Virus record (IMG/VR): IMGVR_UViG_3300021964_000012
Coordinates: 264,293-328,292 of that record
Length of the DNA: 64,000 bases
Reading direction: 5' to 3' (one strand)
In this document: positions 40,810-52,837 of the stretch, piece after piece
How positions within the stretch are numbered: position 1 is the stretch's first letter
Layout: every line of letters starts with the position of its first letter
Translations under genes and position numbers: made by a program
Notes under the pieces: model-generated
What the model was told of the DNA's origin: nothing
What the model saw: only the letters and a program-made list of their open reading frames with translations
Databases searched by the model: none

Positions 40810-41718
40810 TTAGTCTATAACACTTTTGGTGTTAACACCAGAAGCTTGTGATAATTCAGGCTTTGGAGCTGGTTTTACATCTGGCTTTGTAGTTCCATCC
40901 ATGTCACCATATTTTGGTGTTGAACGACCTGATGTGTTTCCATCTTTGATGTCGACTGGCTTTGCATCCATTCCTTTTTGACCTGAGTTAGCAGCTACTG
41001 GACTTTTACTAGCTGGTGATGTTGTAACTGGCTTAGGAGCTGCAACTAATTCTACACCTTCTTCTAAACCTTCTACTTCAACATTAACATCGATTGGCTC
41101 GTCCATTTTGTCTTCCATGCCATCAATCTCGTCCTGCTCCATGTCAGTATCGCTATCAATGTCTGAAATCTCGTCTTGCTCGCCTTCAATGTCGTCTGTG
41201 TTATCGTCAACCTGTGCCATTAGCTCTTCGAATTCACCCATTAGTTCGTCTAATTTGTCTTCGATGTCTACTACACGGTCTTCTAATTCTTCTTCGCCGT
41301 CATCGTCATCAACGTCTACGTCGATCATTTCGATTTCTTCTTCCTCATCTTCCATTCTGACGCCTTCTTCTTCGGCCTCAACTTCGTCAATGAGATCGTC
41401 AACCTGTGATCCACCTAAATCTGTTTCATCAATCTTTTGATCGTTGTCATGTTCTGCGTCACGCTTGCCACGCTTTCCCATTTCGTCGTCTCTACGATCT
41501 TTCATTGATTGTTTTTTGCCTGATTCAGCACCGTCTTTAGCACCTAAATGCTCATCTTCGCGGTCCTTGTAACCTTGCTTTTCTGTAATTTCTTCTTCTG
41601 ACATAATGTCTTCGTATATGTCTTTTGACTTTTCCACAACAATCTCATGGAAAAGAGCTTTTGCATTTTTTTCATCATCGTTGATGACGAATTCAATAAG
41701 TTGCTCAAATTTGTTCAT
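40810..41718 (-). CDS. Acidic prohead core protein (gp67/gp68 position)
   Basis: Highly Asp/Glu-rich 302-aa protein between portal and protease. Confidence 0.65.
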   Translation of the reverse strand: MNKFEQLIEFVINDDEKNAKALFHEIVVEKSKDIYEDIMSEEEITEKQGYKDREDEHLGAKDGAESGKKQSMKDRRDDEMGKRGKRDAEHDNDQKIDETDLGGSQVDDLIDEVEAEEEGVRMEDEEEEIEMIDVDVDDDDGEEELEDRVVDIEDKLDELMGEFEELMAQVDDNTDDIEGEQDEISDIDSDTDMEQDEIDGMEDKMDEPIDVNVEVEGLEEGVELVAAPKPVTTSPASKSPVAANSGQKGMDAKPVDIKDGNTSGRSTPKYGDMDGTTKPDVKPAPKPELSQASGVNTKSVID

Positions 41719-41829
41719 TAAAATAATCCTTCTAAGTATTGGGCTCAGTATAGTACTTACAAGAAAATTAAAAAACTAGTAGTTTATAGGGGTAAAAGTG
41801 GTAGAAAATGAATTATTTTCTGTGCTAAC

Positions 41830-42045
41830 CTACATCTGTGGTGGAGGTGGAGCAAATTGTGCTTGAATACGTTTGAGATCTTGCTTCTTCTCATAGTTTC
41901 TAAGATCGTACATTCTACGCAGTTTAGATATCTGCTTTAGTGTTAGTTTTGTTTTACGCAACTCGCCAAGTTCCGGAACAGAGTTATCGTCTTTCTGTTC
42001 TTGATATCCGTCTGCTGGTGCATCATAAAATTCAAATAGTTTCAT
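41830..42045 (-). CDS. Small prohead-associated hypothetical protein
   Basis: 71 aa; RKTKLTLKQI motif; late box 5 nt upstream of the ATG. Confidence 0.7.
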   Translation of the reverse strand: MKLFEFYDAPADGYQEQKDDNSVPELGELRKTKLTLKQISKLRRMYDLRNYEKKQDLKRIQAQFAPPPPQM

Positions 42046-42053
42046 AATAGTAT

Positions 42054-43802
42054 TTATGCAGGAGGTTCTTCAGGAGCGGCTGGTGCAGCCATGTCAACAT
42101 TTACATCAACTTCTTCGCCACCTGCAGCTTCTTCACCAGCAACTGCATCTCCCATCTGTACATCACCTTCAAAGTCGCCAGGGCTTACACCTACTGTACG
42201 TAAATCACTACCAGTTGGTTCAGTTTCAATTGGTTGTCCCGTTTCTTCTTCCCAATACTCAGTATTTTCTTGAAGTTCATCGTCGGTTAATCCAAGGTAG
42301 CGTTTCAGAAGAAAACGCTTGCTCATGTAGGGCAGTTGTTCCAATGCACTGAATGCTTGTATTCTAGTTGTGTCTAGTTCGGCCTGTCTATAGCTCGCAA
42401 AATTCTGTGGAGGTGCAAATGTAATGTTAAAAAGTCCACTGTCAATGTTGAACCCTCTCCAACGCATGAACATTTTGAATTCATCATCAAGTTTTTCAAT
42501 TACCTGCTTTTGCAATCTTTCGCAGTATTGATTGAATCTGTATTCTTGTATGAGTGCAGTACCAACTCTACCGTCGTTCATTGGTCGATCTGAGTCATCT
42601 GGACCGGTTGGTAGATAACTGCTAGGAACACGCAAGCCTCTGCACATTTTGTTGTTAAAGTATTTTAAATCGTCAATCTGTCCAAGGTTTTCACCACCCG
42701 GCAGTGTTTCAACTTTTGATCCACGTCCTTCGGCAGTTTGAGGAAAGAAATAGTCTTCGTTTATGCTCAATGGATTGTAAGTTGTATCCATGGTTGTTGC
42801 TTGTTGACCACCCTGTGGATTTGGGATACGTCTTTGATGTACTTCATTTTTCACACGTTCGACAAACTGCATGGCTAGATGTGATGGCATGTTTCCAACA
42901 TCAATGTAAAATACACGTCTTTCAGGAGCACGTTGTACTCTGTATATAAGAATAGCATCTTCAAGCAATTCTTTTTGTTTGAACACTTTGAATATCATTT
43001 CCAGCACACTCTGCGAGAAAGGCCAGAAAAAATCTAATCCTTCACTGAGTCCAAGATGCACTACATTTTTAGCATCAATTACGGTTTCATTTACTGTGTG
43101 TTCGAATCTGCTTTGTCCAGCAGGAGCATTTGGAATGGTATAGTTTGAACCACCCATGGCACTGCCACCAGTTCCAATTATTTCGCCTGAGTTTAATCCA
43201 GTGCCATAGTCGGTGGTTTTCTTTGGTGCAATACTGAGATTTTGAAAGTTTGGATTTATATCTCTAATCACATACTGCTCAGGACGTTTGCCTTCATTTT
43301 CATTAACAATCACACGCACAACCTTGGTCATGTCAACCCAGTATAGTTCAAATGTTTCTGGATCACGCACAAACACTTGATCGCCGTACTTTATAGTGTT
43401 CCTAAAAATACGAAACATACGCTGATCAAGTTTATTAAGTTTTGTCCACTGTTGTAGTTGTGTACGTATTATTTCAATTTCATTATTTGTTGGTTTATCA
43501 GTGTATTGCACTTCAAATGGAGTATTATTGCTTTCATTCTTTTGTGTTGCAAACTCTGCTATAATGTCCAAACAAGCATTGATTTCACTGTCAGTATCCA
43601 TGTTTTCATACTGATTGTAGCGTTCTATCCTGTTAGGATGACCAGAGTATACTTCTGGTAGATGACTTTGATAGTTTTTAAAACCAAACTGTCCGCCAGA
43701 ACCACCACTACCATAAGCAGGACCCCTTGCGTTTTGTCCACTTATAGGACTCAGTTGACCACCGGTGCTACCAACTGCTTTGAAGTATTTTTTCCAGGAC
43801 AT
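42054..43802 (-). CDS. gp20: Portal protein
   Basis: LLEDAILIYRVQRAPERRVFYIDVGNMP, EDYFFP, TLPGGENLGQIDD. Confidence 0.97.
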   Translation of the reverse strand: MSWKKYFKAVGSTGGQLSPISGQNARGPAYGSGGSGGQFGFKNYQSHLPEVYSGHPNRIERYNQYENMDTDSEINACLDIIAEFATQKNESNNTPFEVQYTDKPTNNEIEIIRTQLQQWTKLNKLDQRMFRIFRNTIKYGDQVFVRDPETFELYWVDMTKVVRVIVNENEGKRPEQYVIRDINPNFQNLSIAPKKTTDYGTGLNSGEIIGTGGSAMGGSNYTIPNAPAGQSRFEHTVNETVIDAKNVVHLGLSEGLDFFWPFSQSVLEMIFKVFKQKELLEDAILIYRVQRAPERRVFYIDVGNMPSHLAMQFVERVKNEVHQRRIPNPQGGQQATTMDTTYNPLSINEDYFFPQTAEGRGSKVETLPGGENLGQIDDLKYFNNKMCRGLRVPSSYLPTGPDDSDRPMNDGRVGTALIQEYRFNQYCERLQKQVIEKLDDEFKMFMRWRGFNIDSGLFNITFAPPQNFASYRQAELDTTRIQAFSALEQLPYMSKRFLLKRYLGLTDDELQENTEYWEEETGQPIETEPTGSDLRTVGVSPGDFEGDVQMGDAVAGEEAAGGEEVDVNVDMAAPAAPEEPPA

Positions 43803-43838: not shown

Positions 43839-46361
43839 TCAGTTGTTGCGAGCGGCCTGTAATTGTTCGCCTTGTAATCTTGTGCCTTTGGTTGTTTGAT
43901 CCAGCATGGCCTGTAGTACACCAAGAATTTTCTCGTTACTGCCGCCATCACCTTGCATCGTTTGCGTTTCTCCTGCAGCTGGACCACCTTCCATGTCTGT
44001 GAGTCCTTGGTTGCTAATAGATAATCCACCTGCGTCGCCGAGTTTTGGGCCAGCAACTGATCTAAGTTGACTTAGTGCATCAAATTGACCACCTGTAGCA
44101 GCACCTTGAGCACCAACTGTTACACCATCTCCCATGCCATAACTCATTGAAGAAACTCCGCCTTTGCTAGTGTAACTGCTTACATTTCCTTTGTCTATTC
44201 TTTGGCCAGCCATTTGACCATTTACATAATCTCTTTCGTAGTTTACACCGCCAACAGTTCCTTGCATGCTCATCGAAGTTGATGCATCTGCTGAACTGCT
44301 CATTTGCACGCCGCCTATTCTTGGTCCTTTTCTATAGAGTTCGTTTCCTCTACTGTCCACTGTTACAACAGAACCATCGCCGAGTTTGACATCAAAGGTT
44401 CCTGGTATTCTTCCTGGCACACCTGGACCAACCTGTCCTGGTATTACCACTCCACTGGTTTTTCCCATTTTCAGTAATTCTGGTCCTTGTTCACCAACCA
44501 AATAGGTTTTACCTGCTTCGGCTGCTCCACCTTCTGCAAAACTACCAGCAACTTTAGCTTTACTTTTATCACCGCCTGAAGAAAAGTATCCAGTTAACGC
44601 ACCAATTAAAGCACCAATTCCTCCGCCAATTGCTGTTCCTATTCCAGGAGCTATCGCTGTACCTATAGCAGCACCGGCTAATCCCAGTGTGCCAGCGCCT
44701 TTTAATGCATTTCCTGTACGATCAATAGTTTCGTCTTTTATTCCTGCGTCTTCTTGCATCTTTTTCATCAGACCAGGTATACCATCTTTAATCAGTGTAT
44801 CCATGTAGCCAACCAGCGATGACATGGTTTTTAATTGTATTTCAGCAAACTTTTTCACTGCCTCACTGGCCAATGGTAAAGTTTTATCTAAGGCAAATTG
44901 ATCAAGTGCAGTAGCGGTTTTAATCATGGCTTCTTGAGCACTTACAACGTTCTTGGTTAACGAGTCTTGTGTGTTTGCAAGTTTGTTTGTTTCGTCTGTT
45001 GCTTTTTTAGAAGCTGCACCAAGATCTTTTGTAAAGGTCAAGGCTTGAAGTGCTGGAATAAGATTTTCAAGTGAAGTTCCCATTTTACTAACTTGAGATG
45101 CAAATGCATCGCCACCTAGTCCTTGGTAGAATGTTTTACCTTGTTCTTGTAGCATGCTCAGTGCAGTTGACGAATCAATGGCACCAGATTTTAACTGCGA
45201 TATTACCTGTTGACCAACTGGTCCCATGACTTTTAAGAATTCTTGAGCAGCTGGTGTTCCGGCATTGCTTAGTGCATCAGCTAAACCATCACCAATTGCT
45301 TTTAAACCAGGTATACTGTTCAGTGTGGTAATTGTTTTAAGTGTAGCTTGAGCGGCATCTTTACCATTTTTACGCTCAATTTCACGTATTGATGCACCTT
45401 GTCTAGCATCACGTTGGACTGCATCAATTTCTTTCTGAGATTCTTCAATGCTTTTTCCAGTAATCTTGGATAGCTCTTGTAGATTCTTCATGTACTCTCG
45501 AGAACCTTGAGCCAGTGCTTGTGTGTTCTGAACTTCGTTACGACCTTGTCTTTGTTGGAACTGAATATATTTTGCGGTTAGTTCGTTTTGTTGTTCAACA
45601 CCTATACCGAGTGTGAGCAATTCTGACCTAAATGGTCTCATGGCTTTGGTTGTATCGCTTAATCCTTTAGCAGCTTCAGCACTTGTGCCAAATGCAAACG
45701 ATAATGTTTCACCTTCTTTGGTTACTGTTTTTGCAAAACTATCAAAACTCAATCCAGCATTCACAGCCTGTTGACCAAGTCCACGCATTCCGTCAGCACC
45801 AAGAGCACCAGTCTGTGCCGCAGTTCTAAAAGCACCAGTGATTCTATCTAGTTCAGCAGTAAATGTTTTACCAACTGCACTTACTATTTCACCAGCAGCT
45901 TCGCTTAGAGCCGCTATCATAGTACCTGCAGCCTTTCCTAGTCCTCCAATTAAAGGTATAGCTCCAATAGTTGCTGATACCAATCCGCCTGTGACTTTAC
46001 CAGCCATTTTGATTGCACTACCAGCCATTTCAATAGACGGATTTAGACTGCGAAACGACTCTCTGTTGTCTCGCATAGCAGTTGAAGCAGCTTCTAGTGC
46101 TTGTGCAACGCTTAAGGTTCCACCAATTGCTTTTGTTGTGGTACGCATCGCCTTAGTTGTTAGACTTTGGCGTTGTCCTTCTTGTTTCATGCCTTTGGCA
46201 GTTAAGCCTTGCTCTTCTTTGTCAAGTTTGTTGCCTGACTTTAAAAGTTTAGTATAGTCTTCGAGGCTTTTTTTAGCATCCTCCATGTCAGGGCCAGAGC
46301 GACCGCCAGCTCGTTGTAGCTGTTCTAATATTTGTTGCAGTAGCCGCTCTTGTTCGTCCAT
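43839..46361 (-). CDS. Tape-measure-like protein
   Basis: Long Ala/Gly-rich helical protein with glycine-zipper hydrophobic segments and FAEGG...YLVGEQGPEL motif. Confidence 0.7.
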   Translation of the reverse strand: MDEQERLLQQILEQLQRAGGRSGPDMEDAKKSLEDYTKLLKSGNKLDKEEQGLTAKGMKQEGQRQSLTTKAMRTTTKAIGGTLSVAQALEAASTAMRDNRESFRSLNPSIEMAGSAIKMAGKVTGGLVSATIGAIPLIGGLGKAAGTMIAALSEAAGEIVSAVGKTFTAELDRITGAFRTAAQTGALGADGMRGLGQQAVNAGLSFDSFAKTVTKEGETLSFAFGTSAEAAKGLSDTTKAMRPFRSELLTLGIGVEQQNELTAKYIQFQQRQGRNEVQNTQALAQGSREYMKNLQELSKITGKSIEESQKEIDAVQRDARQGASIREIERKNGKDAAQATLKTITTLNSIPGLKAIGDGLADALSNAGTPAAQEFLKVMGPVGQQVISQLKSGAIDSSTALSMLQEQGKTFYQGLGGDAFASQVSKMGTSLENLIPALQALTFTKDLGAASKKATDETNKLANTQDSLTKNVVSAQEAMIKTATALDQFALDKTLPLASEAVKKFAEIQLKTMSSLVGYMDTLIKDGIPGLMKKMQEDAGIKDETIDRTGNALKGAGTLGLAGAAIGTAIAPGIGTAIGGGIGALIGALTGYFSSGGDKSKAKVAGSFAEGGAAEAGKTYLVGEQGPELLKMGKTSGVVIPGQVGPGVPGRIPGTFDVKLGDGSVVTVDSRGNELYRKGPRIGGVQMSSSADASTSMSMQGTVGGVNYERDYVNGQMAGQRIDKGNVSSYTSKGGVSSMSYGMGDGVTVGAQGAATGGQFDALSQLRSVAGPKLGDAGGLSISNQGLTDMEGGPAAGETQTMQGDGGSNEKILGVLQAMLDQTTKGTRLQGEQLQAARNN

Positions 46362-46427
46362 TTAATTTTTTACCTGTTTTAAAGCCGTATAAGTACACTT
46401 ACAACTATATTTATGGTAGGAAAAAAC

Positions 46428-47330
46428 ATGGCAATACAACCAGGCGCCCCAATTCAACCAGTACAACCAGTGATACCAAAAACTGCACACGCACCATCAG
46501 GCAATCCATTGGCTAAACACTTTAGACAACCATCGATCTATATAAAATTGCCCAGTGAAGGTGTATGGTATGATGAATCTATTATTACTATCCCCGAATC
46601 AGGCGAAGTACCTGTTTATCCAATGACTGCACTTGACGAAATCACTTATAGAACTGCTGATGCATTGTTCAATGGACAAGCAGTTACAGATGTTATCAAA
46701 AGTTGCATACCTGCATTTAAAGATCCCGCACGAATCAGCACGTTGGATCTTGATACTGTGCTTATAGCAATTAGATTGGCAACTTTTGGTCATGAAATGG
46801 AATTTACCAGCAAGTGTCCAGAATGCGAAGAATCAAATGATCTTGCACTTGATCTTAGACAAATTATGGAAAAGGTTAAAAAACCTGACTTTGGATCACC
46901 GCTGTCATTTGGTGATATTGAAATACATTTCAAACCGTTGACCTACAAAGAACAAAACGACAACAACATGGCACAGTTTGAAGATCAAAAAACCATGGAA
47001 AGCCTTCCAAATATGGAAATGTCTGAAGAAGAAAAACTCAAGATACTGCAAAAAGCATTTGGAAACATCAGCAAACTTACACTTGTTGCACTTGCAGACA
47101 GTATCAGCATGATACAATCAGGCGATGATGTTGTTGTTGATCGAACACACATAGCAGAATATTTGGAAAATTGTCCATCACAACAGTTTGAAAAGATTAG
47201 AGAGAAGATTGCTTCAATCAGAGAAAGTGGAGAAATGGATCCACTGCACATAGTGTGCAACGATTGCAAACACGAATATACCACACCATTTACAATGAAT
47301 GTTGCAAATTTTTTCGCATCAGGCTCTTAA
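46428..47330 (+). CDS. gp26: Baseplate hub assembly protein / tail chaperone
   Basis: NPLAKHFRQP.IYIKLPS.G, PMTALDE, D.DTVLIAIR.AT.G, two CxxC motifs, C-terminal NFF; start at ATG 46428 after AGGA. Confidence 0.8.
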   Translation: MAIQPGAPIQPVQPVIPKTAHAPSGNPLAKHFRQPSIYIKLPSEGVWYDESIITIPESGEVPVYPMTALDEITYRTADALFNGQAVTDVIKSCIPAFKDPARISTLDLDTVLIAIRLATFGHEMEFTSKCPECEESNDLALDLRQIMEKVKKPDFGSPLSFGDIEIHFKPLTYKEQNDNNMAQFEDQKTMESLPNMEMSEEEKLKILQKAFGNISKLTLVALADSISMIQSGDDVVVDRTHIAEYLENCPSQQFEKIREKIASIRESGEMDPLHIVCNDCKHEYTTPFTMNVANFFASGS

Positions 47331-47545
47331 CGTCCACGTCTGAAGAGATTGAAAAAATCATTGACGACATGGACAAAGAAGTTAAGAGCCTTAAAGAAAG
47401 CATGCTTAGAAGCGTTTGGTACATGCGAGGTGGTGTTACATACACCGAAATCGTAAACATGAGCTACGATGAACGAGTATCAATCAACAAAATCATCGAA
47501 GACAACTTAGAAACTGCAAAGAAAACTGGAAGAGATTTTTGGTAA
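47313..47545 (+). CDS. gp51: gp51-like baseplate assembly ORF (possibly a -1 frameshift extension of gp26)
   Basis: WYMRGGVTYTEIVNMSYDER motif; -1 frame relative to gp26; no clear SD at internal ATGs; start uncertain. Confidence 0.6.
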
Positions 47546-48048
47546 TCGATCAAGTGAAGGCTGATATTGAAGATTGGTTGATCAACTTTGTAGAAGTTCC
47601 TCATCCAGCACTAGGAAACTGGCCACCATGTCCGTTTGCTAGGCAGTCAAGACTGAGAAACAAGTACGATGTAAGACCAGGCGCAGATGTTGAACGTGAT
47701 TTATTTTTGTTTGCTAAGAAACAGTACCTGGGTAAAAACGATGTTGTGATATTTGCCTACGCTCCTGACCAGTATGATGATGCCTACTTCAACTGGGCAG
47801 TAGACACTATGAACATGAGCAAAGGTTTTAAAAAACGCAACCTACTAGCACTAGCAGATCATCCTGACACAGTCGAAACACACAACGGTGTCTGTTTCAA
47901 CATGGGTAAATATGCACTAGTATTACTACAAGACAAAACTAAACTAAACGAACATGCACGTATGTTAGCACACAGAGGCTACTATGATGGATGGGACGAA
48001 GAATACCTGCAAGAGGTATTTGCACATAGACGAGATCCAAGAAAATGA
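47539..48048 (+). CDS. Hypothetical protein (DUF1415/DUF6875-like CPFA motif)
   Basis: WL..FVEVPHPALG..PPCPFA, DHPD; TTG start. Confidence 0.55.
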   Translation: MVIDQVKADIEDWLINFVEVPHPALGNWPPCPFARQSRLRNKYDVRPGADVERDLFLFAKKQYLGKNDVVIFAYAPDQYDDAYFNWAVDTMNMSKGFKKRNLLALADHPDTVETHNGVCFNMGKYALVLLQDKTKLNEHARMLAHRGYYDGWDEEYLQEVFAHRRDPRK

Positions 48049-48476
48049 TATACGCAAGAATTGACCTCAGTCAAACCAATTACACAATTATGGATAACTG
48101 CAAAAAACTTTCATGCCCATTTCCAAAACCACTTGAAGCAATTTACGATGCTTACTGCAAGCACAAAAAATTTAAAAGTGTTATGCCTATATTTCCAGAA
48201 GAATATTATGACGACAAAAACGAAGTCTATGGTTACTACAACAAAGATGAAAAACTGGTTGCATTCAGTCTACTTAGATGTTATAATAACAAGAACGTTG
48301 AAGCTGTACAGTTTGCTTGGGACTATAAGAACCCAGGATTGCGTTTAGGCATACGCAGTTTAAAAAACGAGTGTGCAATATATAAAAAACGTGGTTTTGA
48401 ATATTTGTATCTCGGCCAAGCAGATGATTATAAAGCAAAAATTGACGGCTTTGAAATACTTGGAGGCAGAATATAA
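48045..48476 (+). CDS. Aminoacyl-tRNA--protein transferase (ATE/Bpt C-terminal)-like GNAT protein
   Basis: KLVAFS...EAVQFAWD...LRLG..SL..E......GFEYLYLG...YK pattern aligns by eye with ATE_C. Confidence 0.65.
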   Translation: MIYARIDLSQTNYTIMDNCKKLSCPFPKPLEAIYDAYCKHKKFKSVMPIFPEEYYDDKNEVYGYYNKDEKLVAFSLLRCYNNKNVEAVQFAWDYKNPGLRLGIRSLKNECAIYKKRGFEYLYLGQADDYKAKIDGFEILGGRI

Positions 48477-48793
48477 TGAACGTTTACACCATTTACGCCG
48501 ATGTAAAAGAAGGTATAGATGCACGAACATTTGTAGCAAACATGAAGCTTTTTCTCGATAAATTGCCCACCATGCATGCCTACAGAATCACAAGAATGAA
48601 ACTAGGATTCCGTTCAATGGATTTGCCAGAGTTTAGAATTGACATGGAATTTGAAAGCATGCAGGCACTTGACGATGCTATGAGTCACGTGGTAGCAAAC
48701 GTTGATGATATTGAAACAGAACATGTAGGTTTCAATCAATGGGTTGATGTAGAAACCATACAACATTTTCTCTATAGAGACTATCCAGACTAA
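48476..48793 (+). CDS. Dimeric alpha-beta barrel-like protein (DUF6614-like)
   Basis: YRITRMKLGF...PEFRIDMEF.SMQALDDA. Confidence 0.6.
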   Translation: MNVYTIYADVKEGIDARTFVANMKLFLDKLPTMHAYRITRMKLGFRSMDLPEFRIDMEFESMQALDDAMSHVVANVDDIETEHVGFNQWVDVETIQHFLYRDYPD

Positions 48794-49389
48794 CACCATC
48801 CATTTATGTAATCTTCCAGCATGATTTGCTTGATACGCAGTTGTTGTAAATTGGTTGGGGCCGCACGCATACGGTTATCTTTGCGATGATGTGTAGTACC
48901 TGCTGGTACGCCTAGCTGTTCTGCTATTTTGTGAACTTCTTTATAGTTATAGATATGTGTATACACAGATTGATCAGGACCTAGTCGAGCAGTGTTAGTT
49001 TCGCAATGATCAGCAACGTTTGGATTTTGTTTATAAACATCAAAATCCTTAATAAAGTTGTTTAGACTAGGTGATTTAATCCATAGATTTTGATTAGCAC
49101 TATTGGTCATGGTATGATAGAAACCACTTACAAACTTTTCTATTGGATCACGCCACAGTGCAATGCGTATGTCAGCTGACATCAGCTCATGTTCAAACTC
49201 TTCAAAATACCTAGACTTATTGTATACACCAGGACACTCGTTTTCAAAACTTCTAAAATGTTGAATTTCGTTTGGATCAGCATTCCATATTGCTTGTGCA
49301 ACATAACTCAACATGGTCGTAGTGCTACATTTATGATTACGCACTATTGCTATCGTTTTGGTATAATGATCAAATTTAATTAAGCCCAT
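48790..49389 (-). CDS. Sulfotransferase family protein
   Basis: 5'-PSB-like HKCSTTT and 3'-PB-like RDPIEKFVSGF; terminal ED(Y) motif. Confidence 0.75.
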   Translation of the reverse strand: MGLIKFDHYTKTIAIVRNHKCSTTTMLSYVAQAIWNADPNEIQHFRSFENECPGVYNKSRYFEEFEHELMSADIRIALWRDPIEKFVSGFYHTMTNSANQNLWIKSPSLNNFIKDFDVYKQNPNVADHCETNTARLGPDQSVYTHIYNYKEVHKIAEQLGVPAGTTHHRKDNRMRAAPTNLQQLRIKQIMLEDYINGWC

Positions 49390-49403
49390 GTGCTTATTTA
49401 ATT

Positions 49404-49855
49404 AGATGTCTAAAGACATCTGTTGCTTCGTTAACACTCAGCAACACTTTTTAGAAGTCCTCATCTAGATAGTTTGGTCATACTTGCCCTACTAAGGGCA
49501 AGTCTAAAAAACCGGTTCTCATCTGAGTTATCCAGTCACTTGAATAAAGAGATTTGCGTATGCAACAGGGGCGGTTGTGCTGTACCCCTTACTCTAGCCT
49601 TGTCTCACAACGGACCGTTCTGTATACCCCTTCAAGCAAAGTATACCAACGTATGGGTTGTATCTGTTTCACAGAGCCCATGTCATTCTAGCCTTAAGTT
49701 AGCTATATCCTTTGACGCACCAGTTCTGTCGGCTACAACTTGTGTTGGCAGACCTCAAGGTGGATCGAGGTTCCTCGATCAAACGATGTCATATTAGCTT
49801 GGGAAATTTAAAAAGTTGCTCTGAGCATAGCTCTAGTAGTGCCTGTGTCATACTT
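49404..49855 (-). ncRNA. Candidate large structured non-coding RNA (family not identified)
   Basis: ~450-nt gap in an otherwise gene-dense genome, higher GC than flanking genes, at least 9 stems and 2 potential pseudoknots. Confidence 0.6.
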
Positions 49856-49857
49856 GT

Positions 49858-50679
49858 TTATGACGTGGTATTGAGTGCCTGTACAAAAATTGTTGTCAAG
49901 TGTTTGTTGGTTTTTATGCCTGGATGCTTGTTGTCTTTGTTGGTATCTATCTTGTTTGATTCCATTGAATTATAAAGATTTAGCCATTTATCTTCACGTA
50001 TTGTACCTGCTTTTTGATATTCGTCGTGCATTTTATTATATAATATTTTATAGTCTTCATCATTTCGTGTTTCTAAATCTAAAAGATCTTGTGTATACGG
50101 AGTAGTTTCTTTTGGAACCTCATACTCCACCTTTTTAAAAAAGTTCTTGTCCCAATTGCACAAGCCGTTTATAAAGCTAATGTTGGTATTAGTTAGTTCT
50201 GCTATACAAGTCAAAATGTTTATATATTCGATCAATTGAACCAACCTATAATGTTCGTGTTCTAATAATATAAATCTATCAAAACAATCTTGTACGTAAT
50301 CACCAGGATATGAAACATTGTTGTGCAAGTTTATCGATCGTTCTTTACCACCTGCACACGAACGTCTTGTTGTATCCCAAGTCTCTAATCCAGGTGACCA
50401 TTCATGTCTCATAGGCGACGTCCATTGTACAAATGCATGGCTATACCTGTTCTTTAACAATGCACTAGCAGTAGTTTGAAATATTCTTAGATTACTGTTG
50501 CCTCCGGTTGCAATGTTGTCTAAAGGTTGACCAAAAAATAATTGATTATGAAGCAAATTTACCCACAGATGATTGCTATGTTTACAGTCACCGAACCCGC
50601 GTTGTCCTTCTTCATTGATCCATTCATCACAGAAACCCACGCCAGCAGTAAAACTACAACCTGAATACAACACAGTCAT
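49858..50679 (-). CDS. SGNH/GDSL-like hydrolase-fold protein
   Basis: SGCSFTAG, NIATGGNSN, VQWT, DNKHPG. Confidence 0.6.
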   Translation of the reverse strand: MTVLYSGCSFTAGVGFCDEWINEEGQRGFGDCKHSNHLWVNLLHNQLFFGQPLDNIATGGNSNLRIFQTTASALLKNRYSHAFVQWTSPMRHEWSPGLETWDTTRRSCAGGKERSINLHNNVSYPGDYVQDCFDRFILLEHEHYRLVQLIEYINILTCIAELTNTNISFINGLCNWDKNFFKKVEYEVPKETTPYTQDLLDLETRNDEDYKILYNKMHDEYQKAGTIREDKWLNLYNSMESNKIDTNKDNKHPGIKTNKHLTTIFVQALNTTS

Positions 50680-51083
50680 CCTTTGAGTATTCCTTTCTGA
50701 TGAACACGTACTCTAATATGCCCGTTATACCAATCATTTGATTCTAACACCTTGTGTGTGAATTGTTCTCTGGCCTCAATGTAACTTAATTCACTTTTGT
50801 TTTTACACCAAAACATTATTTCTCGTTTGAACTTGTCTTTTCCTAATTTTTCTACATCTGCTGAAAGCTCATCACTGCTTCCATAGTATTCCTGCCAGTC
50901 ACTTTCAACAGTGTATCTGCGTTTGTTTGTTCTACCCTTAAGTGGCTTTTTACTACGTTTAAACTGTGTTAGTTTCTTGCCTATGTATTTCCTATCATTG
51001 GTTGTATTTGTTATTATATAAACAAAACCAATCATGCCTTCTGGTATGTCGAGAACTTCTTTGTCTTTATAAAACCAACTCAT
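50676..51083 (-). CDS. Stand-alone GIY-YIG endonuclease
   Basis: GFVYIITN...RKYIGKK, YYGSS, FKREI, E...F...VL...YN. Confidence 0.8.
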   Translation of the reverse strand: MSWFYKDKEVLDIPEGMIGFVYIITNTTNDRKYIGKKLTQFKRSKKPLKGRTNKRRYTVESDWQEYYGSSDELSADVEKLGKDKFKREIMFWCKNKSELSYIEAREQFTHKVLESNDWYNGHIRVRVHQKGILKG

Positions 51084-52837
51084 GCAATATCTATATCCGT
51101 GCTATAACTTGTAAAGCCGTTTTCCTTAACAACCTTCAACAGATTATTTACACGCCCTGCAAGTTCATCTTTATGAGATACCAACCAAATGCTTTTTGCT
51201 CTTTCTCTTGCCATCTTTTTCAGTAATGCAAGTGCAGCCTCAACACCTGATGTGTCCATACCTGAATCAATCATCTCATCAATGAACAGTAAGTTAATAG
51301 CTCCGTACAGGCTCTCCCATACATCACGGAATGCCCAACTCATGCTTATAATAAGTCTGTTGCGTTCACCTCTGCTCAAGTTATCAAAGTCTAAATCTCT
51401 ACCAAGTTCTTGTATTTCAACAGTCAAATCGTTTTGAAATATAACTGTGTGTGGCAATCCTATTCTATCCAAATAGTGTGTAAGCCTTGAATTCAAGTAG
51501 CTGAGATTCTGGTCAATTATACGTTTACGCACAAAACTATCTTTGTTGGTTAGCAGTTTTAGCAAAAAGTCTTGATGATCATGTAGTCTTGTTAGATCAT
51601 TTAGTTTGTCGTATGAAATTTCAGTGGCGGCAGTGGTTTGCATTTCTACTATTTGATCAACGTAAGGATCGGCTTCTGCACGTTTGCTTTGCAACTGTGT
51701 TTCAAGTGAGGATAGAGTTGATCGATGATTGTGTGCATCAGACACGCTATCATAAAAAACTCTTGGTCTCGCTGGTACTTCTTTCTTATCTGCCTTGAGT
51801 GCATCAATTCCTTCCTGTACTTCTCTAAGGAAATCACTTGCCCCATTGTATTCCTCCTGCGCCTTTGCTACATGTTGTTGGTGCGAGTCCATTTGTGTAA
51901 CACTTTGTCCGCAACTGCCACAAGTACCTGATTCCAAACTTTCTAATGCACGTTTAGTTCTGTTTACGTCTTTTTCTGCTCTAGTAACCTGTGCAGTTAG
52001 TGCGGCAATATCTTTTTGTAACTGTGTTTGTGTATTATTTAATTCAGTCCAAATTAGGAGGTCAGCATGAGCTGCTAATTCTGCATCAATATCTACGTGT
52101 GCAAGATCTTCGATAGCAGTTTCAAACTTTTTTACGTCTTCTGCTTTTTTGTTCATCCACAGTGTTTGTCTGCGTTTCAGTGCTTTGACTTGATCACCTA
52201 TTTTATCGTTTGCAGTTTGCAATGCCTTGATGGTCATTTCTTCTTGTTTAATATCATCACGTGTGCGTTTGCTAAGTTCTTTGATCTTGTCAGCACGTTC
52301 ACTGAGTTGTGTTATTCCTAGCAGTTGCTCGATTATCTCTCTTTGATCGTTTTGTTTTAGACTCAAAAACGGTTCAGTGTAGGTGTTTAGTGCCACAAGA
52401 TGTTTGAACATAGTGTGACTCATGCTCAACAGTTTTAGTATAGCACCTTGTGTTTCTCTACTATCACCTTGAGCATAGTCATCTGCTTCTTGTTCACTGT
52501 CATTGATGTAAAACTTTAGTACATTGGGCTTACGTCCACGTTCGATACGATAGCATTGTTCACCAACACAAAAGTCTAAACTAACCATCATGCCTTTTGA
52601 ATTGGTTTTGTTTATGAGATTGTCACGGCGTATGTTTGTAAGTGCTTCACCATAGAGTGCATAACTTAGTGCATTGATTATTGTGGTCTTGCCAGTTCCG
52701 TTACGTGAACCATCACCACCTAAGTCAATGTTTTCACCAAGTACCAGTGTAAGGTCTTGTCTATCAAAGTTAATTGCCTGTGTAGCATTACCCACACTCA
52801 TAAAGTTTTTAACTGTAAGGTCTTTAATTTGAATCAT
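51080..52837 (-). CDS. gp46: Recombination endonuclease ATPase subunit (Rad50/SbcC-like)
   Basis: KNFMSVGN, NGTGKTT, CxxC hook, LSRGE, LFIDE, SHK. Confidence 0.95.
   Translation of the reverse strand: MIQIKDLTVKNFMSVGNATQAINFDRQDLTLVLGENIDLGGDGSRNGTGKTTIINALSYALYGEALTNIRRDNLINKTNSKGMMVSLDFCVGEQCYRIERGRKPNVLKFYINDSEQEADDYAQGDSRETQGAILKLLSMSHTMFKHLVALNTYTEPFLSLKQNDQREIIEQLLGITQLSERADKIKELSKRTRDDIKQEEMTIKALQTANDKIGDQVKALKRRQTLWMNKKAEDVKKFETAIEDLAHVDIDAELAAHADLLIWTELNNTQTQLQKDIAALTAQVTRAEKDVNRTKRALESLESGTCGSCGQSVTQMDSHQQHVAKAQEEYNGASDFLREVQEGIDALKADKKEVPARPRVFYDSVSDAHNHRSTLSSLETQLQSKRAEADPYVDQIVEMQTTAATEISYDKLNDLTRLHDHQDFLLKLLTNKDSFVRKRIIDQNLSYLNSRLTHYLDRIGLPHTVIFQNDLTVEIQELGRDLDFDNLSRGERNRLIISMSWAFRDVWESLYGAINLLFIDEMIDSGMDTSGVEAALALLKKMARERAKSIWLVSHKDELAGRVNNLLKVVKENGFTSYSTDIDIA

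Follow-up and report, generated by a model that had tools for sequence, protein, structure and literature searches.

A jumbo estuarine/marine phage carries a conserved pair of genes, here termed A and B, which encode a predicted small haem-thiolate oxygenase-like protein and a stripped-down relative of arginyl-tRNA protein transferase (ATE1/Bpt), respectively. In related phages the pair often sits with an L-arginine amidinotransferase homologue, which points to an undescribed virus-encoded amino-acid tailoring pathway rather than to a plain protein-tagging enzyme. The window analysed is a stretch of 64 000 nucleotides of IMG/VR record IMGVR_UViG_3300021964_000012, in which A, B and a third gene, C, form three overlapping ORFs downstream of a gp26-like baseplate hub gene (Table 1). 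No description of the module was found in the literature searches run. The family assignments are well supported, whereas the substrate and product are inferred.

Table 1. Coordinates and assignments of the A–B–C cassette and its neighbours in the window.
Feature	Coordinates	Strand	Length (aa)	Start codon	Assignment
Hub gene	46413-47330	+			gp26-like baseplate hub; first gene of the + strand block that carries the cassette (context, not part of the module)
96-aa ORF	47255-47545	+	96		Conserved, no family; may be the 'gp51' of the preliminary description (context)
A	47539-48048	+	169	TTG	Predicted thiolate-haem 'sandwich-fold' oxygenase-like protein of the DUF6875 (P422)/DUF1415/YqcI-YcgG structural class; putative axial ligand Cys31
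B	48045-48476	+	143	ATG	Minimal ATE-family transferase; single complete GNAT domain homologous to ATE_C, no ATE_N
C	48476-48793	+	105	ATG	DUF6614 protein; frequent but not obligatory third member of the module
D199	48790-49389	-	199		Convergent gene with a weak sulfotransferase-like signal; membership of the module doubtful

The preliminary description had reported three overlapping ORFs after gp26/gp51, encoding a CPFA-motif protein, a 143-aa GNAT resembling ATE_C and an alpha-beta barrel protein, and this observation was confirmed. B overlaps A by 4 bases and C overlaps B by 1 base, and there is no intergenic gap between the hub gene, the 96-aa ORF and the cassette. A GTG at 47554 would give A as the 164-aa product that a public gene call uses (P0125). 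The hub gene was identified by PF12322 (T4_baseplate, 61.6 bits) and phrog_150 (baseplate hub), and among the related loci (numbered from L001) the same gene precedes A in L001-L013, L047-49, L064-66 and L069-70. The 96-aa ORF has no significant family match but is conserved at 64-98% in L001-L013 and at 42-45% in L069/L070. The three genes are real rather than chance ORFs: B has 1575 metagenomic relatives and A has 462, 46 IMG/VR loci carry B, and the genes are conserved at the protein level down to about 30-50% identity.

B is a true ATE_C homologue. It scores 26.7 bits against the Pfam ATE_C model PF04377 (cut-off 25), and ATE_C was hit by all 22 aligned family members (best E 3.5e-9), while other GNAT families were hit by at most three, including weak Acetyltransf_6 hits in three members. 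NCBIfam arginyltransferase models were the only hits in that library, with the Bpt model aligning only from its position 124. A profile search of the PDB found only ATE1, at E 2e-4, improving to 6e-10 when the long forms of B (225-268 aa) were included. The structural model (pLDDT 91.8) shows one complete GNAT domain, starting at the first GNAT strand. The top Foldseek hit is KlAte1, with generic GNATs close behind, and the top VIA-align rows are the aminoacyl-tRNA transferases MprF, L-PGS and FemX at Z 14.3-14.8; the acyl-CoA enzymes NMT and VipF, however, score within 1 Z unit of the best rows. HMMER alignments to 7wfx and 7tif, read with an inferred 4-residue chain offset for the N-terminal tag, place W92, E109, Y129 and K130 of B at W260, E277, Y303 and K304 of KlAte1, residues shown by mutagenesis to matter for Arg-tRNA use (PMC9351520). 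Together with ScATE1 F258/W260/D277 (bioRxiv 10.1101/2022.07.20.500667), these align to F90, W92, E109, Y129 and K130, which are invariant in the family. The P-x3-4-(R/S)-L-G...S loop and the Y-L-G strand are also kept. The R/Q-x-x-G-x-G/A pyrophosphate loop of CoA-dependent GNATs, which should lie between strand 4 and helix 3, is absent as read from the sequence; the segment reads D-Y-x-N-P-x-L-R-L-G-I-x-S-L in the family consensus and resembles the ATE1 W-D-P...S-L-G loop instead.

B differs from canonical ATE enzymes in several respects. At 143 aa it is shorter than Bpt (about 240 aa) and ATE1 (about 500 aa), and no ATE_N hit was obtained for B or for the long forms. B has neither the Cys cluster (C20, C23, C94 and C95 in ScATE1) nor the acceptor-site residues R80, Y25 and Y87 that read an acidic N-terminus (PMC9351520), and it has no C-terminal domain. 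The spacer between the Y-L-G strand and the Y-K motif appears shorter in B than in ATE1 and in the long forms, which bridge B and canonical ATE but also lack the cysteines. Five basic residues of KlAte1 alpha3 form a positively charged helix that binds the tRNA acceptor stem; in the first long helix of B only K41 is basic in all 22 sequences and K42 in 14, the other positions vary between basic and acidic, and the family pI runs from 4.6 to 8.8.

A is structurally related to thiolate-haem proteins. Its AlphaFold model (pLDDT 90.7) aligned in VIA-align to AglA at Z 7.2-7.6 over about 150 residues, with the next unrelated row at 4.2, and matched with a TM of 0.84 an Atlas cluster carrying both DUF6875 and DUF1415. 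This is the small alpha/beta sandwich fold of P422, a four-stranded sheet sandwiched by helices. The order of helices and strands matches the published description of AglA, with the invariant Cys between helix 1 and helix 2 (PMC12866846). The CPFA motif lies at residues 31-34 (P-C-P-F-A in context), and C31, P32, A34, D107, N121, Y148 and Y149 are invariant in 17 homologues. AglA and P422 are Cys-ligated haem enzymes (PMC12866846; bioRxiv 10.64898/2025.12.11.692455), but haem binding by A is inferred from fold and one Cys. A scores 16.5 bits against the DUF6875 model PF21780, below the cut-off of 24.5, and 7 of the 17 homologues give weak hits over the Cys region (best E 8.9e-4). The invariant Cys-Pro sits where P422 has its haem ligand (R-x-G-x-V-C-P), yet the motif in A reads L-G-N-x-P-P-C-P, without the Arg that binds a haem propionate in Mc170. 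By eye, of the P422 Trp-binding motifs SBR1-3 (R-x-M/L-x3-D-x2-F; D-x2-Q/H-x3-K; M-x-G-x-F) only an N-x-G-x-(Y/C) stretch on strand 4 resembles SBR3, and SBR1 and SBR2 are not recognisable, so the substrate is probably not bound as in P422. A is also shorter than the published P422 set (180-300 aa), and is viral and paired with an ATE-like gene.

Similarity of A to the YqcI/YcgG guanidine N-hydroxylases (AglA/AlpD, DcsA, GntA) is structural only. A PF08892 search of the whole phage genome found nothing at E <= 10, while the control genomes gave hits, and profiles of A and of C against the PDB returned nothing significant, the A profile not reaching AglA. A is about 70 residues shorter than AglA, whose long L1 and L2 loops shape the substrate pocket.

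C matches DUF6614 (PF20319) over its full length at 66.6 bits (cut-off 25) and has 42 invariant columns among 10 homologues; its nearest Atlas clusters are all DUF6614 and nearly all viral. The alpha-beta barrel label given to C previously is only hinted at by feature neighbours (DUF6974, NIPSNAP-like). D199 gave a PF03567 (Sulfotransfer_2) score of 19.5 bits (E 0.0012), below the cut-off of 22. It was found in L001-L012 only, the window's own clade, and is unrelated to the 346-aa gene that follows C in L047; it was rejected as part of the module on these grounds.

A and B occur together in 52 of the 58 related phage loci scanned, and all six exceptions are cut by a contig end. The pair appears in nine gene orders, including divergent and convergent ones and with a 235-aa long form of B. 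C is present with B in 27 of the 58 loci (26 of which also hold A), in several positions relative to A and B. A gene of roughly 390 aa lies inside the cluster in 15 loci; its profile matches AGAT (2jdx) at E 1.8e-24 over both halves, and also SxtG, HsvA and StrB1, although no Pfam model recognises it. The P-R-D, H-x-D and G-G-x-H-C-x-T motifs are kept and H233, D235, C369 and R91-D92 are invariant, their match to the AGAT catalytic residues being our assignment. The window's own cassette has no amidinotransferase. Its genome has four paralogues, which likewise match AGAT, keep these motifs and are not recognised by any Pfam model; they lie far away, in neighbourhoods with ribonucleotide reductase, glutaredoxin and PAAR genes and no pathway, one of them beside ribonucleotide reductase and glutaredoxin. 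The genome also encodes only three tRNA genes, among them tRNA-Arg and tRNA-Trp. Locus L050 adds radical-SAM and PP-loop enzymes to the cluster.

We tentatively favour a two-enzyme module, carried as a unit by estuarine and marine T4-like and jumbo phages, in which an oxygenase is coupled to an aminoacyl-tRNA-type transferase and acts on an amino-acid or guanidino substrate. In this view B would take an aminoacyl group from a charged tRNA, probably a basic residue such as Arg because the acidic pocket residue is kept, and put it on an amine-type acceptor that is not an Asp/Glu protein N-terminus. A, as a small Cys-ligated haem protein with the fold of AglA (arginine-derivative N-hydroxylase) and of the P422/DUF6875 tryptophan hydroxylases, would use host ferredoxin-type electron donors to hydroxylate the amino-acid moiety on N or C, either before or after that transfer. 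Where present, the amidinotransferase homologue would add or take an amidino group, and C would be an accessory protein. The product would be a modified amino-acid, guanidino or short aminoacyl compound, or such a group placed on a larger molecule. The analysis itself establishes that the genes are real, their family and fold assignments, the conserved residues and the gene linkage; haem binding through the conserved Cys, tRNA dependence and aminoacyl transfer, the substrate class, the order of steps and the use of the product to the phage are inferred without biochemical data. A small-molecule role is suggested by the amidinotransferase homologues, by the L050 enzymes and by the fact that all characterised relatives of A act on free amino acids or small aminoacyl compounds. 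Against the module as proposed, the basic tRNA-binding helix that marks aminoacyl-tRNA transferases is only weakly kept in B, acyl-CoA GNATs tie with the tRNA-dependent enzymes in structural Z, the window's own cassette has no amidinotransferase, the cassette sits in a structural, presumably late, gene block, which is an odd place for a metabolic pathway, and each gene can work alone, since A-like genes occur without B in cultured phages and a later-found freshwater phage has a long-form B without A nearby.

Two known systems are comparable. The argolaphos gene cluster likewise combines a YqcI/YcgG protein with GNAT proteins that its authors class as tRNA-dependent amidoligases, though which enzymes form the peptide bonds was still undecided (PMC8976061); the top conserved-domain hit of AlpF, one of these GNAT proteins, was Acetyltransf_6, whereas the transferase here is ATE-type. 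Arginine chemistry recurs here through the ATE relationship and the amidinotransferase partner. The nearest precedent for how A and B could cooperate is valanimycin biosynthesis, in which the N-hydroxylase VlmH is paired with VlmA, a seryl-tRNA dependent transferase that acylates the hydroxylamine, to build an unusual small molecule. These belong to different enzyme families (a flavin N-hydroxylase and a transferase related to MprF) from a bacterial producer, and there is no evidence here for N-N bond chemistry.

The preliminary description had proposed a tRNA-dependent tagging system acting on host proteins or on acidic neo-N-termini left by the prohead protease, with the upstream Cys-motif protein possibly supplying the missing ATE_N function, or else a small biosynthetic pathway. 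That interpretation is supported in part. The absence of ATE_N from an ATE_C homologue, the lack of an acetyl-CoA-type loop, best structural matches that include aminoacyl-tRNA transferases and the close linkage of A and B hold, and the pathway alternative is the one that the evidence favours. A as an ATE_N surrogate is not supported and was rejected, because A has one invariant Cys rather than a Cys cluster and has the predicted fold of AglA/P422-type oxygenases. A complex prediction of A, haem and B scored 0.06 against a mark of 0.32 and so lent no support, although this score is not used for or against binding. Nothing found here links the cassette to the prohead protease or to acidic neo-N-termini.

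Protein tagging, in which B adds a residue to N-termini of host or phage proteins, for example to make N-degrons, with A and C as helpers or unrelated neighbours, remains the strongest of the rival explanations but is unlikely. It is consistent with ATE family membership and the kept donor residues, with the location next to baseplate genes, with the long-form B that stands alone among small genes in the freshwater phage and with the phage's own tRNA-Arg. However, B lacks the whole ATE_N part that carries R80, Y25 and Y87, which read the acidic N-terminal residue, and the Cys cluster that helps to hold the tRNA end (PMC9351520; PMC10115844), its near-constant partner is an oxygenase-fold protein whose relatives act on small molecules, amidinotransferase homologues, whose characterised relatives also act on small molecules, are recurrent cluster members, and no protease or degradation-adaptor gene was seen among the neighbours scanned. 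It is less likely still that B is an ordinary acyl-CoA dependent GNAT that has drifted towards ATE-like sequence and acylates the product of A or another amine. The structural scores of NMT and VipF, the proximity of generic GNATs in Foldseek, the poorly kept basic helix with some acidic members and the weak Acetyltransf_6 hits would allow this, but there is no pyrophosphate loop, ATE_C is the only family hit by every member, ATE1 is the only PDB sequence match, the ATE-specific W, E and Y-K residues are invariant, and Acetyltransf_6 was itself the top hit of AlpF.

Decoration of a nucleic acid (phage DNA bases or a tRNA) with an amino-acid-derived group, as protection against host nucleases, is similarly unlikely. 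Phages commonly carry clustered enzymes for base hypermodification, one amidinotransferase paralogue lies beside ribonucleotide reductase and glutaredoxin genes and the L050 cluster holds radical-SAM and QueC-like PP-loop enzymes, yet no nucleotide kinase, glycosylase-type base exchanger or DNA-binding domain was found next to A-B in any locus scanned, the cassette of the T4-like lineages is in a structural block and not with replication genes, and relatives of A act on free amino acids. Least likely is a role in counter-defence, in which C or the whole cassette disarms a host immune system, or in sensing, in which A is a haem/redox-sensing partner that switches B on and off, echoing the haem and Fe-S regulation of eukaryotic ATE1. 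An ORF of phage DruSM1 predicted in a preprint to be DUF6614 was reported to have anti-Druantia type I activity (bioRxiv 10.1101/2024.04.14.589459), ATE1 is regulated through its Cys-rich N-domain with a described hemin effect (PMC9351520; bioRxiv 10.1101/2022.07.20.500667), and the cassette lies in a variable island next to a homing endonuclease. On the other hand, the complex prediction gave no support, and the conserved distal-side residues of A (D107, H108, N121 and G123) look, by inference, like an active site rather than a sensor.

Aminoacyl-tRNA transferases outside the ribosome are few (ATE1/Bpt, L/F-transferase, Fem, MprF and some natural-product enzymes), and the small Cys-ligated haem oxygenases (YqcI/YcgG and P422) were structurally defined only in 2025. 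If it holds up, the present finding places a stripped-down ATE enzyme and a miniature member of the haem fold class together, almost without exception in the loci scanned, in widespread uncultured phages; the stretch is near-identical in many estuary and marine metagenomes. Both proteins are short and well modelled, so that what the minimal catalytic core of an ATE-type enzyme can do without its N-domain, and whether phages run tRNA-dependent small-molecule chemistry, become directly testable. It would also correct the automatic label 'arginyl-tRNA--protein-N-Asp/Glu arginylyltransferase' given to some family members, which the missing acceptor domain makes unlikely. A more far-reaching possibility, not excluded but improbable on present evidence, is that abundant estuarine and marine phages encode a compact, tRNA-fed natural-product-like pathway in which B loads Arg or another residue onto a small amine, A N-hydroxylates the guanidino or amino group and an amidinotransferase often remodels it. 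The resulting hydroxyguanidine-type or aminoacyl metabolite would be used during infection as an antimetabolite, a signal or a decoration of a macromolecule, which would be a new class of viral auxiliary chemistry and would make B the smallest known ATE-type enzyme.

B-family proteins were seen only on phage-like contigs. Megablast and tblastn searches of the region, of B and of C against 50 697 cultured phage records found nothing; only A has distant relatives there, in HMO-2011, CRP-345, CRP-810 and S-SCSM2R, and local HMM searches of the HMO-2011 and S-SCSM2R regions found no B, C or amidinotransferase. Of two pattern scans of 185 579 species genomes, the first found nothing and the second found four MAG contigs, of which two are plainly phage contigs with gp26, SegE and tape-measure genes, one is a phage-like block of small ORFs and one is a 2-kb fragment. 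No cellular home for B was found, although the pattern search is narrow.

No terminator-like site lies in 46000-50000, a T4 late promoter word is absent near the cassette, a sigma-70 scan was at chance level and Rfam has no match in 46000-51200. Contigs from four metatranscriptome libraries overlap the hub gene, A, parts of B, C and D199 at 90-97% identity; these are contigs of relatives for which DNA carry-over cannot be excluded, and they are not counted as proof of expression. One 604-nt contig among them spans 47067-47670. In cyanophage-like loci a 218-aa gene lies between B and A; it has no Pfam support but matches phrog_3704, which is labelled 'ferredoxin'.

The window is the last 64 kb of a 328,292-bp virus record with direct terminal repeats. 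Its portal protein is about 50% identical to those of the jumbo myoviruses Atu_ph07, Phosso and PA5oct. The same stretch is near-identical in many estuary and marine metagenomes from many studies, and one IMG/VR contig (L001) matches B at 100% identity, with the flanking proteins 98–100% identical. The cassette lies in a + strand block of five genes with overlapping stops and starts, which begins at a divergent junction with an 840-aa gene on the other strand and ends convergent with a 199-aa gene. No terminator-like site was found inside the block. The observation in the preliminary description held, as its coordinates, lengths, overlaps and CPFA motif for the three genes are all correct. Contigs from RNA libraries were found over the region, but these do not prove transcription. 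The coordinates of the features are collected in the table.

Coordinates of the cassette genes and of other features in the window, in the phage genome outside the window (G000:C1) and in related loci (L numbers).
Feature	Sequence	Coordinates	Strand	Remarks
gp26-like baseplate hub	window	46413-47330	+	PF12322; phrog_150
Conserved 96-aa ORF	window		+	between the hub gene and A
A	window	47539-48048	+	169 aa
B	window	48045-48476	+	
C	window	48476-48793	+	DUF6614
Stretch without a convincing ORF	window	49390-49857		468 bp, between two - strand genes
SegE-type GIY-YIG homing endonuclease	window	50676-51083	-	PF19835, 124 bits
Amidinotransferase-like paralogue	G000:C1	207640-208878	-	
Amidinotransferase-like paralogue	G000:C1	41294-42325	-	
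Amidinotransferase-like paralogue	G000:C1	184248-185180	-	
Amidinotransferase-like paralogue	G000:C1	166709-167431	+	
tRNA genes	G000:C1	61903-63340	-	Thr(tgt), Trp(cca), Arg(acg), the last two adjacent
B, C, amidinotransferase and A in a larger island	L050 (296,543-bp metagenome contig)	1-10429		
Gene between B and A, cyanophage-like contig	L025	5017-5673		phrog_3704
Fatty-acid desaturase/hydroxylase-family gene	L015	7918-8664		PF00487
Fatty-acid desaturase/hydroxylase-family gene	L061	35-739		PF00487
Short B gene	L048	2353-2640		called as 95 aa

Sequence searches with B gave the Pfam family ATE_C just above the curated cut-off, and in NCBIfam only arginyltransferase models, aligned to their C-terminal 100 positions. 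All 22 aligned homologues hit ATE_C, while other GNAT families appeared in at most three. A profile of the family found only ATE1 among 177,635 PDB sequences. When the `long forms' of 225–268 aa identified by an exhaustive search were added, the match to Kluyveromyces lactis Ate1 (KlAte1) improved to E 6e-10 and ran through the Y-K motif. The AlphaFold model of B (pLDDT 91.8) is one complete GNAT domain, so that B is a whole minimal domain and not a fragment. Foldseek ranked KlAte1 first, with ordinary GNATs close behind, whereas VIA-align ranked MprF, L-PGS and FemX first (Z 14.3–14.8, about 135 residues, r.m.s.d. 2.5–2.7), with N-myristoyltransferase and VipF within one Z unit. The fold alone therefore does not decide the donor.

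Mutagenesis of KlAte1 showed that E277, which is placed at the Arg side chain of the donor, is needed, that W260 affects Km 18-fold and is specific to Ate1 among aminoacyl transferases, that Y303F is dead and that K304 is a conserved active-site residue (PMC9351520). The yeast structure paper names F258, W260 and D277 (bioRxiv 10.1101/2022.07.20.500667). In the HMMER alignments these positions fall on F90, W92, E109, Y129 and K130 of B, all of which are invariant. The acetyl-CoA loop motif is absent. B lacks the whole ATE_N part, including the Cys cluster, which binds zinc or an Fe–S cluster and touches the tRNA 3′ end (PMC10115844), and residues R80, Y25 and Y87, which read the acidic N-terminal residue (PMC9351520). 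The basic tRNA helix is only weakly kept. B was therefore classified as a divergent ATE-family enzyme, the donor side of which looks ATE-like and the acceptor of which, by inference, must differ from that of ATE1.

For A, sequence searches gave only a weak DUF6875 hit over residues 9–44, but the model is confident (pLDDT 90.7). Foldseek against the PDB gave no significant row but listed AglA repeatedly. Using VIA-align, the five AglA entries were placed at Z 7.2–7.6 over about 150 of the 169 residues, clearly above the next unrelated rows at 4.2. The Atlas shape search gave a TM of 0.84 to a 596-member cluster whose members carry DUF6875 and DUF1415. AglA is a YqcI/YcgG enzyme with a haem held by Cys44 in a four-stranded sheet sandwiched by helices (PMC12866846). 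DUF6875 has been renamed cytochrome P422 and is a family of Cys-ligated haem tryptophan hydroxylases that need ferredoxin and ferredoxin reductase (bioRxiv 10.64898/2025.12.11.692455). The order of elements in A (helix, helix, strand, helix, strand, helix, strand, strand, helix) matches the AglA description, and its only invariant Cys sits between helices 1 and 2, followed by an invariant Pro. A fails the Pfam cut-offs and lacks the P422 substrate motifs, and was placed in the structural class and not in either family. The preliminary description had suggested that this upstream Cys-motif protein might supply the missing ATE function. However, A has one conserved Cys and a predicted fold that differs from that of ATE_N, so it does not replace the missing domain of B. 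C is a clear member of DUF6614, with many invariant residues and almost only viral relatives.

To examine linkage, B was used to retrieve 46 IMG/VR loci, and further loci were obtained by look-ups of A, B and long-form B. In local HMM searches over 58 loci, A and B were found together in 52, C was present in 27 and an amidinotransferase homologue in 15. In the remaining six loci A or B was found alone, and in each case the contig ends where the partner would lie. Nine gene orders were observed: hub-x-A-B-C (the clade of the window and the related loci L047–L049); A-B-amidinotransferase-C; A, amidinotransferase and C on one strand, divergent from B; A-B-amidinotransferase; B-218aa-A before gp25 and gp6, in cyanophage-like contigs; PIG-L-A-B; B-C-amidinotransferase-A, beside radical-SAM and PP-loop genes; amidinotransferase divergent from long B, with long B convergent with A; and hub-x-A convergent with long B. 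Two contigs labelled as MAGs are plainly the same kind of phage. Linkage that survives this much rearrangement argues for a functional pair. A complex prediction for A and B was uninformative. The relation is not symmetric, as A-like genes occur without B in cultured phages and one freshwater phage has a long-form B without A nearby. In L048, which otherwise has the same gene layout as L047 and L049, the B gene is called as only 95 aa, against 144, and may be a truncated or frameshifted copy, or an assembly error.

The neighbours of the module vary between these loci. In L050 and L051, B, C, the amidinotransferase and A are embedded among at least four radical-SAM proteins (one with a SPASM domain) and two PP-loop (QueC/NAD-synthase-like) proteins, a much larger biosynthesis-like island than in the window. 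In the cyanophage-like contigs (L023–L043) a gene of 218–251 aa always lies between B and A, just before gp25 and gp6. It matches phrog_3704 (labelled `ferredoxin', E 1e-104) but has no Pfam ferredoxin domain; if it really is a redox protein, it could be the electron donor of A. A SET-domain gene lies just upstream of B in L025. The fatty-acid desaturase/hydroxylase-family gene lies next to the module in two unrelated arrangements (L015 and L061), L041 has a PIG-L family de-N-acetylase directly before A, and L022 has a methyltransferase after the amidinotransferase.

The amidinotransferase partner of roughly 390 aa has no Pfam hit. Its profile matches L-arginine:glycine amidinotransferase, SxtG, HsvA and StrB1 at E 1e-18 to 1e-24, with the catalytic motifs kept. 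The cassette of the window lacks this gene, but the phage genome has four paralogues elsewhere. The best of these (E 1.9e-119 to the cluster family) lies next to genes for a ribonucleotide reductase small subunit, a glutaredoxin and a PAAR-like protein. For the second copy, the genome search (41294-41905) noted one TGA inside the match, although the ORF-level search returned 41294-42325 as a single 343-aa ORF.

Three independent lines point to arginine or guanidino chemistry, or at least to amino-acid tailoring. The nearest relatives of B use Arg-tRNA and B keeps the acidic pocket residue; the best solved match of A hydroxylates an arginine derivative, and its sequence-nearest family hydroxylates tryptophan; and the recurrent third enzyme is an arginine amidinotransferase homologue. 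The argolaphos cluster offers a precedent for a YqcI/YcgG protein beside GNAT proteins classed as tRNA-dependent amidoligases. The phage has only three tRNA genes, which include those for Arg and Trp, the amino acids tied to the relatives of A, B and the amidinotransferase; this may be coincidence or driven by codon usage, and we treat it only as a lead. We therefore favour, tentatively, a coupled oxygenase–transferase module acting on a small amino-acid-type substrate, whereas the family and fold assignments themselves are held with high confidence. What the analysis shows is the gene arrangement, the family and predicted fold assignments, the conserved residues and the linkage; all functional statements, including haem binding by A, tRNA-dependent transfer by B and the class of substrate, are inferences from homology, models and gene context.

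Several rivals to this reading remain, namely protein tagging, a CoA-dependent acyltransferase, nucleic-acid decoration, and a counter-defence or sensing role. The interpretation in the preliminary description, which proposed a tRNA-dependent tagging system or, alternatively, a small biosynthetic pathway, was partly supported, with the second alternative being the reading that the evidence favours. Full-text literature searches for these DUF names, for arginyltransferase with phage and for amidinotransferase with phage found no description of this module. Some database entries call family members arginyltransferases; given the missing acceptor domain, that label is probably wrong in its specifics.

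Beyond the cassette, the stretch at 49390-49857 has a higher G+C content than its surroundings (0.42–0.46 against 0.30–0.38), holds several perfect hairpins and folds better than shuffled sequences on both strands (z −2.3 and −2.6). An ORF-like stretch here is conserved in 11 related loci, and there is no Rfam match. The SegE-type endonuclease sits between the gp46-like gene and a 273-aa gene of unknown function, and its best PHROG is labelled `NAD synthetase', which looks like a mislabel. The same endonuclease flanks the cassette in most related loci, marking this as a mobile, variable island.
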